DNA of 64,000 nucleotides, from positions 152,116 through 216,115 of the IMG/VR virus record IMGVR_UViG_3300025012_000027; one strand, 5' to 3'. A model generated the notes under the pieces. It worked only from the letters and a program-made list of their open reading frames with translations. It ran no database searches and was not told the origin of the DNA. This document shows positions 1 through 8,086 of this stretch, one piece after another. Both the position numbers and the translations under genes were made by a program. Position 1 is the stretch's first letter; each line of letters starts with the position of its first letter.

Positions 1-486
1 AACCGCATTCTTAGTACAGTCTTCTTGACGCCATAGAACCGCATTGTATGCTTCAGTTAGTGTAGGAACTACAAACGACCGACAATCAAAACATGGAAAT
101 TCGTTGATCTTTTCTGGAAGATATTCTGCCAATTTTTTGTTAAAATATGCCGCGGCAAATGATGCTAGCACAGAATCTAACTTTTGAAAGCGACCGCCGA
201 ATGGATACTCGGTCATACTATCAGTAGTTGTATACCACACGAGAGTAATTTCATCCGACTGCACATAACCAACAAGTGCGCCAAAACGATCCACTAACTC
301 ACGCATAGTATCTCGCATGAGTTGGGATAGTCGCATATCAAAAGGACGCTTTAATCCCTTAGTAAAAGAGTGGAACGATTTGCCATCGAGCCGAGCAATA
401 AGTGGCTGGCCCTTGAACGCTACTCTGGAAGTAGAAGGAGATTCGTATTGTTTCATACGATCCCCAAAAGATGTCTTATCTGTCAT
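1..486 (-). CDS. thg1: tRNA(His) guanylyltransferase Thg1-like protein (3' end runs off the window)
   Basis: Manual translation MTDKTSFGDRMKQYE...IARLDGKSFHSFTKGLKRPFD...GYVQSDEITL matches Thg1 motifs (RLDGxxFH, YxQSDEI); absent from the ORF track. Confidence 0.9.
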   Translation of the reverse strand, partial: MTDKTSFGDRMKQYESPSTSRVAFKGQPLIARLDGKSFHSFTKGLKRPFDMRLSQLMRDTMRELVDRFGALVGYVQSDEITLVWYTTTDSMTEYPFGGRFQKLDSVLASFAAAYFNKKLAEYLPEKINEFPCFDCRSFVVPTLTEAYNAVLWRQEDCTKNAV

Positions 487-2037: not shown

Positions 2038-4581
2038 TCAACCACATTTACTAGATCCGCAAGAGAGACAAATCTTACATCCTTCTTGGAATACGACTTT
2101 ATCAGAGCCACATTCCAAACATACTTCTCCTTCAACCTTTTCTCCATCCTTAATAAAAGATCCTAGGAACTTCTTAATTTGAAAGATGAAGGTTCCAACA
2201 AACGCATTATCGACACGATCAAGAACAGCGACAATATTCTTGATCAATACACCGTGACGCAACAACAACGAAATAATACGAGTAATTTTGGTGGTGTTTG
2301 CATCAGTAGCAACTTTGCTTGTCACATCAGCAATAAATGCTTCTGGGATTCCTTTATCCTTAGCAAGATTCACCAATCTATCAAACGCATCAGTAGTGGT
2401 AACAGTCTTCTCATGATGATTGGTGTGAACAAACAGTGCTTGAGGGCGAGTCTTGGTCTCATTCCAAACAACTGTCAAATACCACTTGCGCCCTTCTGCT
2501 CTCAACACCTTCATTGATGCCTCGGCTGAGTTTGGCATCTTAACAGTATCTAAAATCACCTCTTCATCATATCCGTTTGTCGTGTTTTCTTTAGATGACA
2601 ATACAGCAGTCATTGTACCCGCTCGATACGTCGTTACCCCCTTAACAACACCTGAGTGGTATGCGGACATATAGATGTTCTTAAAATCTTCGAATGCATA
2701 TTCATTAGGTACATTGATGGTCTTTGACATTGCGGCATCTACCCAATGAGCAAACCCAATCAAGTCATTCAGATGATCCTCGGCAGTCAATCCAGTCAAT
2801 GCAGTGATAGCCCAGTCAGCCCCCTCTTCCCATAACCCGCGTTCGTGCAACCATCTATATCCATAATCCTGGCACACCACTTCTTTAGTCAGCCCACGAT
2901 TCTTATCAATCTTATATGTAGTTCCGTTGAAGGAGCCTTTAAGAATCTCTTCATCGCCTTCTTTAGCAAATTTAAAGACCTCAGTTTCTTCCCAAGCACC
3001 CTCGTACCATTTTGGCACTACTGCTATCATATCATCAGGAACGCTGTTAACGATGACAGTTCGAACGTATTCAGGCATAAAGATTGGCTCCAAACCACCG
3101 GATACAACGTTCGCGCAAATCCCAGTGTTACCTGTTGGTTGAATTGACAGCAATGAACTATTGCGAATGCCGGTAGTTCGTAACTTCTCCATATAAGAAT
3201 CCGATAGGCCAATCATATTAACGAACTTACCATCGGCATGCTTGACAGGATCGCAGTAAGTAAACATGCCGCGTTCAATAGCCAAATCAATAGACGCTTC
3301 GTATGCGGATCGCGCGATTGTGCTCATGACTTGATCGCGTAGTTCGGCTGCTTGATCTGATGCGAATCTAGTTTTTAGCATGAACAATGCAGATCCCCAA
3401 CCCAAAATGCCGATGCCAATACGACGCTTGTTTCGCATAGAATCAACATATTCTGGCAATGGAGCGTCTGAGTATTCATTGACATTGTCCAAAAACCTAA
3501 CCATATATTTGGTGTATTTGGAGATCTTATCAAGATCAAATGCATTATTATCAGAAACAAATTGTGTTAGATTAAGAGATCCGAGACAGCAAACTCCTCC
3601 TGGGGCGAGTGTCTGTTCCCCGCATGGGTTTGTAGCAGCAATAGTCTCACCGTAGTAGAATGGATTGAATTCATTTGCTCGATCCAAAAACAACACGCCA
3701 GGCTCTGCTCTATTGTATGTGGATTCCATGACCAGATTCCACAGCCATTGAACTGAAATAGTTTGGTAATCGACTACTGGTAGTCCCAGTCGTTTCCAAT
3801 CTGCCAAGTTACCATTCCATTTGTCGGCGTATTCTGGATGGGTTGTATCTGGAAACACCAGTGTCCATTGATCCAGTTTTGCAATCTCGTCAGCATCTGC
3901 TTTCTTATCCATAGAATTAATAGCATCTAGCCTATCCATGAACTCAGTGGTGAAGTTTACCGAGAGATTGAATTTCGTGAGTCTACCAGCACTCTGTTTA
4001 GCAGTAATGAACTCAACGATATCCGGATGCCATACATCCAACACCCCCATCATAGCGCCCTTGCGGATCTTACCTTTTGTTTTCTTATGCTTGCTCTTTT
4101 TTCCAGATCCTGCAGTGACAATCTCAGAGGCTTTGTCATACAGTTCCATGAACTTAATCGCTCCGGGGGTCTCTACGCCAACACCATGAATGAATGTTCC
4201 ACGAGGACGAATCCAACTAAAATTCTGCCCCCACCCACCTTCAGATTTTAAGGTGAATGCTTGTTTCTTCAAATCATTGATGATATCGTCTAACGAGTCG
4301 ATATTATATGATGATCTAGGAGAAACGAAACAGTTCAATAATGTAGTACCATTCCAACTAGTTCCAGCATTTGCATATGTTCTACCACCGCAAGTTCCTT
4401 TGAAATCCGTTAATAGATCATAGAATCTAGATTCCCATGTTTCTATATCTTGGGGAGTTTTCTCAACTGATGCGATAGCTTTTGCTACCCTATGCAATGT
4501 ATCGTTTACTGAAGTATCTGTGTGATCTTTATAAGTTTGGGCCCAAACTTCTTCAGCAAACGAGTCAATAAAAGCGGTCAT
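2038..4581 (-). CDS. nrdJ: class II (B12-dependent) ribonucleotide reductase with C-terminal Zn ribbon
   Basis: TNPCGEQ active site, IQPTG motif, C-terminal CxxC...CxxCGxSKC; no beta subunit adjacent. Confidence 0.88.
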   Translation of the reverse strand: MTAFIDSFAEEVWAQTYKDHTDTSVNDTLHRVAKAIASVEKTPQDIETWESRFYDLLTDFKGTCGGRTYANAGTSWNGTTLLNCFVSPRSSYNIDSLDDIINDLKKQAFTLKSEGGWGQNFSWIRPRGTFIHGVGVETPGAIKFMELYDKASEIVTAGSGKKSKHKKTKGKIRKGAMMGVLDVWHPDIVEFITAKQSAGRLTKFNLSVNFTTEFMDRLDAINSMDKKADADEIAKLDQWTLVFPDTTHPEYADKWNGNLADWKRLGLPVVDYQTISVQWLWNLVMESTYNRAEPGVLFLDRANEFNPFYYGETIAATNPCGEQTLAPGGVCCLGSLNLTQFVSDNNAFDLDKISKYTKYMVRFLDNVNEYSDAPLPEYVDSMRNKRRIGIGILGWGSALFMLKTRFASDQAAELRDQVMSTIARSAYEASIDLAIERGMFTYCDPVKHADGKFVNMIGLSDSYMEKLRTTGIRNSSLLSIQPTGNTGICANVVSGGLEPIFMPEYVRTVIVNSVPDDMIAVVPKWYEGAWEETEVFKFAKEGDEEILKGSFNGTTYKIDKNRGLTKEVVCQDYGYRWLHERGLWEEGADWAITALTGLTAEDHLNDLIGFAHWVDAAMSKTINVPNEYAFEDFKNIYMSAYHSGVVKGVTTYRAGTMTAVLSSKENTTNGYDEEVILDTVKMPNSAEASMKVLRAEGRKWYLTVVWNETKTRPQALFVHTNHHEKTVTTTDAFDRLVNLAKDKGIPEAFIADVTSKVATDANTTKITRIISLLLRHGVLIKNIVAVLDRVDNAFVGTFIFQIKKFLGSFIKDGEKVEGEVCLECGSDKVVFQEGCKICLSCGSSKCG

Positions 4582-4663
4582 GAATTTCCTTTTTCTGTTA
4601 TACAATCATTATGAAGCACAGCAATTGCTGCTGAGCGTTTTCGTTGTTTATTTATGCCCTGAC

Positions 4664-5035
4664 CTAGGCGGTAATCTTGAACATGTCCGGTCGCTCTGAG
4701 CACCAACCGTTGCTACGTCCAAACCATCTAACATGTACGATTCCTTTAAGCGTTGCAAATTTATAGAACGTCCAAGAATGAGAATGGGTGTCATCTTGAT
4801 CGATCTCTCGAGGTTCTTTACCCACGGATTCTTCGGCAACGATGATTGGAGATCCCATTAAATCGGATAGATTTCCATGAATGAGTTCTATGTAAACTCG
4901 TTCGTCATCATCTTGATCATGATATAGTTGGTAGATTTGGTGATCCGTTGTCTTAAATCTAATTGCAGCAGCGTCGAAAGCCAGCACCGACGTCATAGTC
5001 TTTCCGACCAATTCGCTTATGGCACACAATTCCAT
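4664..5035 (-). CDS. conserved phage hypothetical protein
   Basis: 123-aa ORF with SWTFYKFAT...RWFGRSNG motif. Confidence 0.7.
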   Translation of the reverse strand: MELCAISELVGKTMTSVLAFDAAAIRFKTTDHQIYQLYHDQDDDERVYIELIHGNLSDLMGSPIIVAEESVGKEPREIDQDDTHSHSWTFYKFATLKGIVHVRWFGRSNGWCSERPDMFKITA

Positions 5036-5043
5036 AGTAACTC

Positions 5044-5526
5044 CTATGCGGCCTTTTGACCATCCAACACAAACTTCATTCTGTCTGCAGCATATGATGC
5101 CGCAAATGCCTTTGGCTTAATCATAGGAACAACGTTGCAAGTTCCTTTTATGTACCCGATCGCTTGTTGCACAACACAGTTAGATCCATGCATATCACTG
5201 GCGTTAAGATCCAAGTGAATCTCCACATGACGATCTTCTAACACATCAGCCAATTCATGGAACAGTGCGGATACTTTCACGACTTCTTGCATCAATCGCA
5301 TTGCGGGTTTACTTTTCTTCTGGTCGTAGTCTCGTTCACGTTCAACCGATCCGAAAATCTTGCAGCCATGATTTCCGTCGATATGCACGACTACGGCTAA
5401 CGTATAGTCTGCATACCAAGTTCCTGCGATGTTTAGCCGCTCACTATCAGCCCCTAGGTACACTTTAGTGCCTTCGCTTTGAGCCAATATAAATTCTTTA
5501 ACCGCCGCAATGTCTAGTTTACGCAT
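5044..5526 (-). CDS. RNase H-like YkuK family protein
   Basis: YLGADS, EIHLDLN and AASYAAD motifs. Confidence 0.8.
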   Translation of the reverse strand: MRKLDIAAVKEFILAQSEGTKVYLGADSERLNIAGTWYADYTLAVVVHIDGNHGCKIFGSVERERDYDQKKSKPAMRLMQEVVKVSALFHELADVLEDRHVEIHLDLNASDMHGSNCVVQQAIGYIKGTCNVVPMIKPKAFAASYAADRMKFVLDGQKAA

Positions 5527-6233: not shown

Positions 6234-7226
6234 ACCATATTAAACCGTATTACGATCACATCCAGCTGAATTTTCGCTGATCTCATCCAGATTCATCGAG
6301 TTTCGAGTTTCGACCACACCCTGGAATCCAATACGGTTTAATATGGTGGCCGGAACCTATCCCGGCCTTAACACCCGATATTCTTTAGCGTCTCCATACG
6401 GTCTACCAGCTTTCTCGTAAAGGGCTACTGGCGGTTGTGTACTTCGTCGTCGGGACTCATAGTTTACGCTATGTTATCATCAGTTAATCCGCATAGGCAT
6501 TGCGGTGTACCATATAGAAACATACTAAAGCAGGCTTTCAACGTGTTTGGCTTCTCTGGTCTGCTTCGCCTCCAACATGGCTAATATGTTTCTATATGGT
6601 CTGTAGATGGTGTGTTGTTACACTAAATCGAACTTCAGCCTTACCGTTTCCGGGGTGCCTCTGTACTTAACCTGGTGGCTCACGTGAGATTCGTATACTC
6701 TAGAGCCTTATGCTCTATTTTCTACGTTCGATACCTTACAATGCCCTTCTACTCAGTATCTACACACTCAACGTGCCTTTGTCGAACTCTTTAAAGGATG
6801 GCTACTTCTAAGCCCACCTTCCGTCTACAAAACCATATTTTAACTGACTAATATTTCTGTATGTTGACGCATACAGGTTTCGCAGCCCGTCAAAGCCACC
6901 GAAAATCACCCGACTCGCTGGTCGAAATGACCCCCGTCAATCAGTTAAAATATGGTGGGTCTGTTTCTCAGCCAACCCGTTCAACTGTCTCTACAGTTGC
7001 TATAGCATATAGTTAAACATCTTTTCTGATGATCTGGATTGTGTCCAGGTACTATATTTTAATACTTTCGAGATCCCAGTCCCAATTGGCATATGACCTC
7101 CAACTAACCCTGTTCCTACTGATACTTCGGGACCCACGCCATGATACGCGCCTTTGCCCTTAGTAGATCTTAAACTCCCCAACGTATGCATCCTCAGTTC
7201 GTCTAATGAAAGTATTAAAATATAGT
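6234..7226 (-). repeat. array of four 16-19 bp inverted-repeat stems (AC[CT]ATAT...ATAT[GA]GT) enclosing and separating structured RNAs
   Basis: Perfect stems bounding 6234-6347, 6509-6600, 6832-6956 and 7051-7226. Confidence 0.85.
6601..6830 (-). ncRNA. ncRNA containing a 23S rRNA GTPase-associated-centre (H43/H44) mimic
   Basis: GGAAGGTGGGCTTAGAAGTAGCCATCCTTTAAAGAG...GTGTAACAACACACC, closed by GTAGACGG/CCATCTAC. Confidence 0.8.
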
Positions 7227-7283: not shown

Positions 7284-7748
7284 TCATTGTGTATCTAAAA
7301 CAACAGTATCTCTAACATTCATCAGACACTTGCCTAGATTGTTCTGACCAACATCGTTACAAACGCCCCAAAACGTGTCGTGCCACCAATTCGTTTCTTC
7401 AATGTACTTAGTCCCAGTGGACTTCAACAATGCCATTAGAGATTCGTTTTGCTCGAACTTGGCGTATAATACTTGCTGCATCTTATCAACGCGAACATAG
7501 TTCCAATCAGACCTAAGAGTGACCAGTTGTCCAAACTTCTTTGCGGCCGGACCATCCATCGCGGTCAACATAAGCTTTTCACAGATGTCAAACGTTTTGC
7601 AAGACATATATGCACCTTCTGAGCACCGATACACTCTACCTTCGAAAGTAAAGTCTTCCAAATGGAAGTTTGATAGTGGGCGATATTTTCCAAACAACCC
7701 ATAGATATGAGTGTCAGTTTCTCGAGTGTCTACAATAGCTGGTTTCAT
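7284..7748 (-). CDS. NADAR family protein
   Basis: LSNFH, SEGAYMSCK, AKFEQN, DTFWG and GQNNLGKCLM motifs. Confidence 0.9.
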   Translation of the reverse strand: MKPAIVDTRETDTHIYGLFGKYRPLSNFHLEDFTFEGRVYRCSEGAYMSCKTFDICEKLMLTAMDGPAAKKFGQLVTLRSDWNYVRVDKMQQVLYAKFEQNESLMALLKSTGTKYIEETNWWHDTFWGVCNDVGQNNLGKCLMNVRDTVVLDTQ

Positions 7749-8086
7749 AATAAATCCGTTGTAGCGTGGCGTTTAGCTGCTTCATCTAATCTCCATTCCC
7801 AAGCAGTTACAGGGTCGCCTAATTGCCCAGTAACTCTACGCATGGCGTTCATCACAGCCGCCTGTCTAATAGTAATTTCAATTGCGCCGTTAGCAACTGC
7901 TATAGCTCTTTTTGATATAGCGATATCATAATGGCTACCACTCGTCTTTTCTGGCGATTGCCACCATTTGCGATCAACCCCTATTAGGTCAGCCATTGCA
8001 TGTAACTCTTCATCAGTATCGGCTAGCATGTGACACATCTTCATTCTACCATATGCGGCTTGCATGTTATCGACGTACACGGTCAT
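7745..8086 (-). CDS. DUF4031-like protein
   Basis: MTVYVD...CHMLAD...ELHAMA...HYDI. Confidence 0.75.
   Translation of the reverse strand: MTVYVDNMQAAYGRMKMCHMLADTDEELHAMADLIGVDRKWWQSPEKTSGSHYDIAISKRAIAVANGAIEITIRQAAVMNAMRRVTGQLGDPVTAWEWRLDEAAKRHATTDLL

Follow-up and report, generated by a model that had tools for sequence, protein, structure and literature searches.

The GTPase-associated centre (GAC) of bacterial 23S rRNA (H43-H44, E. coli 1051-1108; Rfam LSU_rRNA_bacteria RF02541) is built from two hairpins and a mini-hairpin at 1082-1086. The ribosomal protein uL11 recognises the folded shape of this RNA, is the molecule known to recognise folded GAC RNA by itself, and is required for the activation of RelA. 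In E. coli 23S, the contacts between H43 and H44 are those of C1072/C1092 with C1072-G1099 and of G1071/G1091 with G1071-C1100 (PMC2952862). L11 makes contact with H43, while nearly the whole of H42, with its conserved core, is required by the L10-L12 complex (PMC1635324).

Copies of r-protein binding sites away from the ribosome are found in the autoregulatory leaders of r-proteins (L10, L1, S8, S15), which follow a logic of competition. These leaders act in cis, as the 5′ UTRs of r-protein operons in cells, and what they mimic is usually just a local motif. A further group of comparable systems, in which a ligand is mimicked and its partner titrated, comprises 6S RNA (RNA polymerase), CsrB/RsmZ (CsrA) and the phage tRNA arrays for which a counter-defence role has been proposed. 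The tRNA cluster of phage T4 also encodes small stable RNAs, species 1 and 2 (rnaC/rnaD), whose function is unknown and which to our knowledge have no resemblance to rRNA. Viruses are defined in textbooks as lacking ribosomal RNA, and we know of no precedent for a mimic of a whole rRNA domain in a virus genome.

Here we describe a GAC-like RNA element in a window of 64,000 nucleotides, the whole stretch analysed, taken from an IMG/VR virus record (IMGVR_UViG_3300025012_000027) and identical to part of a 216-kb IMG/VR contig. Like the GAC of 23S rRNA, the element has the two hairpins, the 1082-1086 mini-hairpin, the non-canonical U1060·U1078, G1093·A1098 and A1103, the tertiary triples and local matches to LSU rRNA models. 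Unlike the GAC of 23S rRNA, it is a stand-alone gene and not part of an rRNA, its H44 is split after 1089 by an extra arm and has A in place of U1101, and the conserved H42 that leads into domain II is absent, a short helix of arbitrary sequence standing in its place. An earlier note on this DNA had read from the minus strand two 23S-like blocks separated by an insert of roughly 160 nt and closed by a helix, and all of these were located at 6828-6603 (Table 1), with an insert of 163 nt. In the window copy the closing helix consists of seven Watson-Crick pairs and one C·A mismatch, and no stop-free stretch that crosses the element on the transcribed strand is longer than 29 codons.

Table 1. 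Features of the GAC-like element and its surroundings (positions in the window; numbering of equivalents after E. coli 23S rRNA)
Feature	Position	Strand	Remarks
Whole element, free-standing GAC-like RNA	6828-6603	minus	about 226 nt with closing helix; ends set by closing helix
Closing helix, 5′ strand GTAGACGG	6828-6821	minus	H42 position; pairs with 6610-6603
5′ block AGGTGGGCTTAGAAGTAGCCATCCTTTAAAGAG, 33 nt, equivalent to 1057-1089	6819-6787	minus	
H43 equivalent (1057-1081)	6819-6795	minus	E. coli 23S identity and LSU rRNA model match
H43 loop UUAGAAGU with A1067 equivalent	6811-6804	minus	
1082-1086 mini-hairpin equivalent (UUAAA)	6794-6790	minus	U1082-A1086 covaries
G1087-A1088-G1089 equivalents	6789-6787	minus	arm departs after 1089
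Extra arm, 163 nt	6786-6624	minus	U linker, basal stem, variable interior, 3′ linker UUUA
Arm basal stem UCGA/UCGA	6785-6782 / 6631-6628	minus	compensatory changes at all 4 basal pairs
Arm module AGAGGCACC-CCGGAAACGG-UAAGGCUGAAG	6662-6633	minus	flanking helix covaries
GAAA-capped small hairpin inside arm module	6653-6644	minus	
H44 equivalent (1091-1104), GTGTAACAACACAC / GUGUAACAACACAC, 14 nt	6623-6610	minus	A1095 equivalent included
Closing helix, 3′ strand CCATCTAC	6610-6603	minus	C1104 equivalent (6610) is its first base
Upstream flanking hairpin	6956-6832	minus	16-bp perfect stem; 3 nt from element; putative processing stem
Downstream flanking hairpin	6600-6509	minus	2 nt from element; putative processing stem
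NADAR-domain gene, immediately upstream of element	7284-7748	minus	E = 8e-22

The 5′ block shares 27 of 30 positions with E. coli 23S 1059-1088 and aligns locally to E. coli 23S with a score of 45 (shuffled sequences 18.6 ± 2.2). The 3′ block of the window, taken alone, shows no significant similarity to E. coli 23S (score 16 versus 17.4); it is a diverged form, with U1092-A1099, of the family consensus GCGTAAYAGCACAC, which differs from E. coli H44 GCGTAATAGCTCAC at 1-2 positions. Rfam LSU rRNA models match the window at 6773-6821 (27.5 bits, E = 1.5e-6 in a narrow search), and two other members score 28.8 bits (L041) and 31.4 bits (L008), but the model is recovered only with narrow or short-armed Rfam searches and all three scores lie below the Rfam gathering score of 50. 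An Rfam search over a wider region, at the gathering score and at E ≤ 10, gave no match at the element, and no Rfam family other than LSU rRNA matches it. By score, context and continuity the element is not an LSU rRNA, while at the sequence level it has the helices and tertiary contacts that define the GAC.

The claim that the locus holds a free-standing mimic or derivative of 23S H43-H44 was borne out by the proposed search for homologues in phage genomes, which returned at least 153 distinct elements with covariation and variable inserts, from phage contigs, named phages and some bacterial assemblies. In two Pseudomonas phages, pf16 and UNO-G1W1, blastn turned up unannotated copies within the tRNA arrays. 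When viral contigs were scanned three times with exact patterns, 30, 97 and more than 119 stretches were obtained, and an exact-pattern scan of the genomes of about 185,000 species gave 44, of which 28 are unique complete elements and about 13 are chance 18-mers in coding sequence that were set aside. Also set aside were the record of Paenibacillus phage Pd_22F and small “phage” records, which contain plain 23S. A single one of the 97 viral stretches collected with the H43-based pattern is genuine 23S, with 2356 nt aligned and an uninterrupted H44; the alignment of the other 96 to 23S extends over 30-49 nt only, and in this set the extra segment is found at the same position wherever the 3′ end is present. 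Because the members were gathered by exact sequence patterns, the conservation of each half of the core was read only from sets found via the other half.

Among the named carriers are Cronobacter GAP32, Pectobacterium CBB, Serratia BF, Yersinia fHe-Yen9-03/04 and several Erwinia jumbo phages, as well as Xanthomonas XacN1/XaC1/XbC2, Aeromonas 4_4572 and Pseudomonas pf16, UNO-G1W1, Milchi and Astolliot; in none of these named records is the element annotated as an RNA. It occurs across unrelated phage genera and in many habitats, as a stand-alone gene of about 150-450 nt with a core that is near-identical between members and an arm that differs. All members have in common features that are absent from rRNA, namely the arm after 1089 and its linkers (U on the 5′ side, UUUG or UUUA on the 3′ side), and A replaces U at 1101 in 65 of the 69 viral members. 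These shared derived features argue for one origin and not for repeated capture of host rDNA.

We examined the secondary structure using the anchored stacking of 69 unique viral elements, on which the pair counts are based. The place of H42 is taken by a 9-bp closing helix of arbitrary sequence that is paired in 56-69 of the 69 members. Each position of this helix shows all four kinds of Watson-Crick pair among the members, and beyond it pairing falls to the chance level. In some members this helix reaches up to 31 bp, and the difference between elements without an adjacent tRNA and the others was not significant (median 11.5 versus 9 bp, p = 0.07). Within H43, pair 1058-1080 is G-C in 30 members, U-A in 22, A-U in 13 and C-G in 4, while in H44, pair 1092-1099 is C-G in 56 and U-A in 13, the window belonging to the latter, and G1087-C1102 is paired in 68 of 69. 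The U1082-A1086 pair of the mini-hairpin is U-A in 49, C-G in 21 and A-U in 12 members of the unbiased viral set, and U-A in 13, C-G in 12 and A-U in 2 members of the genome set.

Furthermore, the rRNA-derived structure was scored on a tool-made alignment (A3) of 47 members drawn from both collections. We found that 94.8% of the cells are paired, compared to 69.8 ± 0.9% for shuffles (0 of 500 reaching this level) and 37-54% for slid partners, and that the covariation score, which ignores kinship, is 0.66 compared to 0.18 for shuffles and at most 0.19 for slid partners. Covariation is seen in every helix, compensatory changes are present in 19 of 24 pairs (counts that ignore phylogeny), and both H43 (99.7% paired) and H44 (100% paired) keep the pairing register of rRNA while showing such changes. 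RNAalifold, run on 12 members, arrived independently at the closing helix, at H43 and H44 and at the conserved module of the arm.

The conservation extends to the tertiary core. The triple 1072·(1092-1099) is C·(C-G) in 56 members and U·(U-A) in 12, including the window, with a single exception (n = 69), and in the first 27 elements the covariation of 1072 with 1092-1099 was significant (Fisher p value = 3e-4, kinship ignored). The second triple, G1071/G1091/C1100, is invariant, as are U1060, A1077, G1093·A1098, A1103 and G1091-C1100 within the family; U1060·U1078 is kept in most members and is occasionally U·C. G1087, A1088 and G1089 are each present in 28 of 28 members of the genome set, and A1088 is found in 82 of 87 members of the unbiased viral set and is invariant in the 5′-pattern viral set, whose pattern fixes this base. 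As the base triple 1072·(1092-1099) covaries as a unit, these data argue for a native three-dimensional fold and for selection acting on it, a reading drawn from sequence comparison.

Next to this core, the loops are less constrained. The earlier note had stated that the equivalents of A1067 and A1095 are retained, which is correct for the window, where both are present, but these bases are not invariant in the family. In the ascertainment-free viral sample, A1067 is found in 72, G1068 in 66 and A1070 in 73 of 87 members, compared to 87 of 87 for the core bases. A1095 is kept in 67 of 69 members and is C or G in a few; position 1096 is A in 55, G in 13 and U in 1, and position 1097 is C in 35, U in 29 and A in 5 (n = 69). 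The least fixed part of the core in the unbiased samples is thus the set of loop bases on its factor- and thiopeptide-facing side, and positions 1067-1070 and 1095-1097 are presumably freer than in rRNA. The pattern suggests that the fold is constrained ahead of the factor-facing surface, positions 1067-1070 being less conserved than the bases that form the fold.

What had been described as an insert is indeed an intervening segment, but it is better seen as a structured and obligatory arm with a covarying basal stem than as a passive interruption. Its length ranges from 46 to 370 nt (median 144), its sequences fall into about 125 unrelated clusters among the matches listed for the 153 elements, and no free-standing copy without an arm was found among the members collected. 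The two arm ends pair over 4.25 bp on average with their cognate partner compared to 2.79 ± 0.11 bp with mismatched partners, and 46 distinct basal stem sequences are represented; the arm ends therefore form a covarying stem, which makes the segment an arm and the whole a four-way junction. The arm exits this junction directly after A1088/G1089, and this geometry, as well as the change of U1101 to A in 65 of 69 members, is a counterpoint to the uL11-binding role proposed below.

No similarity was found between the arms and 23S (median z = 0.03, maximum 2.5), so that the arm is not a second rRNA mimic such as one of H42 or of the sarcin-ricin loop. The arm of the window is of the commonest type, shared by 34 of the 153 members among the matches listed. 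This type contains a module in which a covarying 3-bp helix (GNC/GN′Y, with the variants GGC/GCU, GUC/GAC and GAC/GUC) surrounds ACC, a small capped hairpin and UAAGG. Of two candidate identities for this module, a likeness to the specificity domain of RNase P RNA (rnpB) was rejected, as the comparison of 35 arms to E. coli rnpB gave a median z of 0.6, and a tetraloop receptor (GGUAAG/CACCC with a GNRA cap) is a speculation only, since the loop is UAAC as often as GNRA. We propose that the hypervariable arm is accessory RNA that stabilises or individualises the element.

We then consider the genomic context, in which no neighbours other than tRNAs are conserved. A tRNA on the same strand lies within 40 nt of the closing helix in 38 of 69 members of the viral set, mostly at a gap of 1-12 nt, and the tRNAs at the loci amount to 414 on the same strand versus 1 on the opposite strand. 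The element thus fills a tRNA-like slot in polycistronic arrays, from which cleavage of its neighbours would free the RNA; given that most flanks are tRNAs a few nucleotides away, the nucleases of tRNA maturation would be the general processing route. The element of CBB stands alone in an intergenic gap of 408 nt. The window has 23 tRNA genes, all on the minus strand like the element, and the window copy is atypical, the nearest tRNAs being 506 and 1271 nt away. It is flanked by two very stable hairpins with conserved termini (ACCATAT...ATATGGT), the upstream one with a fold energy of -52.6 kcal/mol (z = -6.7) and the downstream one with z = -5.9. The two bracketing stems pointed out in the earlier note do exist at both sides of the element, but they are peculiar to the source phage, most members being flanked by tRNAs instead.

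An all-against-all clustering of 1362 neighbouring ORFs revealed no family beyond 4-5 closely related loci, and neither the window nor 2.1 Mb of carrier loci encodes a homologue of uL11, uL10 or uL1. With no recurring neighbour protein and no uL11, uL10 or uL1 gene in the carrier DNA, a host partner is likely. On the same strand upstream of the window copy lie the genes of a DUF4031 protein and of a NADAR-domain protein, and NADAR homologues are also found near the element in pf16 and in two further loci (L011, L030). The idea of a conserved protein partner was set aside, as NADAR occurs at 4 loci, DUF4031 at 1, an RNaseH-like protein at 3 and DUF7448 at 1, which amounts to no general association. 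Phage bL12 genes likewise show no co-occurrence with the element, their carriers being different phages.

Taken together, the retention of H43, H44 and the tertiary core, the replacement of H42, the absence of a linked phage protein and the relaxation of the factor-facing loops make an RNA that binds uL11 off the ribosome the best-supported reading. We tentatively propose, with somewhat less than even confidence, that the element gives rise to a stable small RNA that is processed together with tRNAs and sequesters host uL11 away from the ribosome. Under this proposal, the RNA would be transcribed together with the phage tRNA genes and released by the nucleases that trim its neighbours, RNase P and the 3′ tRNA-processing enzymes in most phages and, in the source phage, probably a double-strand-specific nuclease that cuts at the flanking hairpins. 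Its core, predicted to fold like 23S H43-H44, the docking site of uL11 in the ribosome, would then bind host uL11 as a protein sponge. Binding of uL11 is suggested by the retained fold-forming nucleotides. The earlier note had proposed a decoy or scaffold for uL11/uL10, RelA or a defence factor, and of these candidate partners uL11 is favoured over uL10 by the absence of the conserved H42 core.

Ribosomes from which uL11 is withheld would be weakened in the steps that depend on it. The most plausible of these, and here we are purely inferring, would be the activation of RelA by uncharged tRNA in the stringent response. By flooding the cell with tRNAs of its own, a phage may risk setting off this response, and a uL11 sponge expressed along with the tRNAs would blunt it. 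As a counterpoint, uL11 on mature ribosomes may be hard to titrate within a short infection.

The main rival to the uL11 sponge, which we regard as possible but unlikely, is that the RNA diverts GAC-attacking enzymes, as a decoy or as a sacrificial substrate; such enzymes would be Tre23-type ADP-ribosyltransferase toxins, nucleases or other modifying enzymes. By analogy with phage tRNAs, which are thought to buffer tRNA-targeting defences, an abundant free copy would soak up an enzyme that comes from the host or from competitors, and the location of the element within tRNA arrays fits this idea; we know of no anti-phage defence aimed at the GAC. A toxin that ADP-ribosylates H44 of 23S at nucleotides 1095-1098 is documented (PMC8661411), and NADARs reverse guanine ADP-ribosylation (PMC11125620), so that the NADAR gene immediately upstream of the window copy and those of pf16, L011 and L030 speak for a decoy. 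Against this, NADAR lies near the element in only 4 of about 96 loci, all of one arm class, and neither an ADP-ribose-related protein nor any other protein family is a general neighbour. Furthermore, the constraint is strongest at the buried tertiary contacts and not at the exposed loop bases, and it is comparatively low at nucleotides 1095-1097, which the documented toxin targets.

Another reason to keep the H43-H44 tertiary core complete could be a larger assembly: joined by uL11, and possibly also by uL10-bL12, the RNA would build a stalk-base particle outside the ribosome, which would engage EF-G, EF-Tu, IF2, RF3 or RelA there and thereby reprogram translation. A1067 (72 of 87) and A1095 (67 of 69) are kept in most members, and further components of the stalk, bL12 for one, are known to be phage-encoded (PMC6375957). 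We nevertheless find this platform improbable, as the conserved H42 core needed for uL10-bL12 is absent, the factor-facing loop bases vary, the sarcin-ricin loop that makes up the other half of the factor site is missing from elements whose arms have no 23S similarity, and the phages that encode bL12 are small podophages and not carriers of the GAC-like RNA. A related and equally doubtful version is a portable piece of ribosome that, with host uL11, would engage RelA or translational GTPases off the ribosome or would replace a damaged GAC in trans. We give about as little credence to the view that the arm carries the function and that the GAC core, with or without uL11 as a chaperone, is a nuclease-resistant and well-folded chassis from which arm structures particular to each lineage are offered to partners of phage or host origin. 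In favour of this view, the arm is an obligatory part that no member found is without, it is structured with a covarying basal stem, and a module with internal covariation is common to 34 members among the matches listed. About 125 unrelated clusters and arms as short as 46 nt are, however, hard to square with a shared arm function, and the conservation of the core is far above the needs of a mere scaffold. Finally, a non-functional relic, either a decaying fragment of host 23S rDNA, the alternative by which the earlier note was to be refuted, or an assembly contaminant, has a negligible probability. Contaminants do exist, ordinary 23S sequence being present in L088 and in the record of Paenibacillus phage Pd_22F. 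In contrast, only 30-49 nt of each element are 23S-like and its flanks are tRNAs or phage genes, the members share derived features (fixed arm site, U and UUUG linkers, A1101), compensatory changes are found throughout, and the element recurs in phage genera that are unrelated to each other and in many habitats; conservation together with covariation, including that of the tertiary contacts, refutes the relic reading.

The proposed uL11 sponge shares with r-protein autoregulatory leaders the off-ribosome copy of an r-protein site and the logic of competition. It differs from them in being a viral gene that is proposed to act in trans, that lies beside tRNAs and that copies a whole tertiary domain; with no r-protein gene nearby, the element is not an r-protein leader. 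Like T4 species 1 and 2, it is a non-tRNA RNA that lies among the tRNA genes of a phage and is presumably transcribed and processed along with them, and T4-type records were absent among the matches to the core query, with no sequence relationship seen. The proposed titration by a ligand mimic places it close to 6S RNA, CsrB/RsmZ and the phage tRNA arrays with a proposed counter-defence role, and unlike 6S RNA and CsrB/RsmZ it imitates an rRNA domain and its binding is a proposal only. No description of such an RNA was found in open-access papers and bioRxiv, and one may exist elsewhere.

Collectively, these results point to selection that maintains a whole functional domain of 23S rRNA as a gene of its own across many unrelated phages, among them well-studied jumbo phages whose annotations have never included it. 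The family explains unannotated gaps in phage tRNA arrays and merits an entry in an RNA family database, and with a fixed core that bears a hypervariable arm it amounts to a natural experiment in how a GAC fold accommodates a four-way junction. If the alternative of a stalk-base particle or of a GAC acting in trans were true, the element would give a virus direct control of translation-stress signalling, and no functional gene derived from rRNA would have been known before in any virus. If the RNA binds uL11, as we tentatively propose, it would represent a new class of viral host-takeover factor, an rRNA-domain mimic that acts as an r-protein sponge, and would provide a natural tool to perturb the GAC, the stringent response and release-factor function.

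The GAC-like RNA of the window is directly adjoined by two members of a set of four long hairpins, all located on the same strand as the tRNAs, in the interval that separates the NADAR gene from tRNA-Met. Their perfect stems enclose branched interiors, and the hairpins are very stable (fold z = -4.8 to -6.7). ACCATAT...ATATGGT termini are common to three of the four, with ACTATAT in the fourth. They could serve as processing stems for RNase III, represent additional structured RNAs, or belong to a small family of repeats.

The arm is the extra segment that splits H44 of the GAC-like RNA. The LSU rRNA model aligned its first nucleotides (window 6773-6786, UUCGACAAAGG-CAC) to H44 itself (UGCGUAACAGCUCAC), and GCGAAGCAC-like strings open several arms of the family. 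This resemblance may go back to a duplication of H44 in the distant past, or may be coincidental.

In a single lineage (L040, L046, L092 and L096, among the stretches gathered in our searches), which has an arm of 171 nt, A1095 (E. coli 23S numbering) is replaced by C (GCGUCAUAGC). To our knowledge A1095 is universally conserved in rRNA, where it is a thiostrepton contact. Two contigs from actinobacterial MAGs (Propionibacterium and Mycobacterium; L146 and L109) contain the conserved arm module of the window copy together with the H44-side 3′ block, and no recognisable 5′ block was found within 900 nt. They are either members with a very long arm or diverged copies. Uninterrupted 23S sequence was found as well: the genome of Paenibacillus phage Pd_22F holds an ordinary 23S rRNA segment that continues past H44 and probably stems from the host or from faulty assembly, and plain 23S is also present in several small ‘phage’ records of the collection.

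Coordinates of features in the window and in stretches gathered in the searches (L handles)
Feature	Location	Strand	Detail
Ribonucleotide reductase large subunit	window 2038-4605	-	
DUF7448 protein	window 4664-5035	-	
RNaseH_like (PF04308) protein	window 5044-5526	-	
Long hairpins	window 6234-6347, 6509-6600, 6832-6956 (and 7051-7226)	tRNA strand	perfect 16-19-bp stems
NADAR-domain protein	window 7284-7748	-	Pfam E = 8e-22
DUF4031 protein	window 7745-8086	-	
NADAR homologue, pf16	L001:4273-4734		
UCA-anticodon tRNAs or tRNA-Sec-like genes, tmRNA-model match	L007:10177-10257; L041:6756-6842; L089:3380-3461 and 3983-4152		
YrlA-like match	L018:2270-2339		RF02553
23S segment, Pd_22F	L101:2340-2760		MZ092003.1 near 83.6-84.0 kb
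Arm module and 3′ block	L146:~5000-5084; L109:~1-51		

Downstream of the window's tRNA/ncRNA region lie the PF04308, DUF7448 and ribonucleotide reductase genes, the first of which was found again in L053 and weakly in L111. The tRNA region itself contains the NADAR and DUF4031 genes, a short distance upstream of the GAC-like RNA, and NADAR homologues occur in the tRNA regions of pf16, L011 and L030. Among the carrier phages, L089 has a short tmRNA-model match. L018 has a weak Y-RNA-like match (31.6 bits versus a gathering score of 69), which is flanked by tRNAs and closely precedes the GAC-like RNA of this phage.

The recurrence of NADAR in tRNA regions may hint at reversal of ADP-ribosylation on nucleic acids as part of a phage translation-protection kit. 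Some carriers also encode tRNAs with UCA anticodons or tRNA-Sec-like genes, and therefore stop codons may be recoded in these phages. Because loss of uL11 weakens RF1-dependent termination, such recoding could be relevant.
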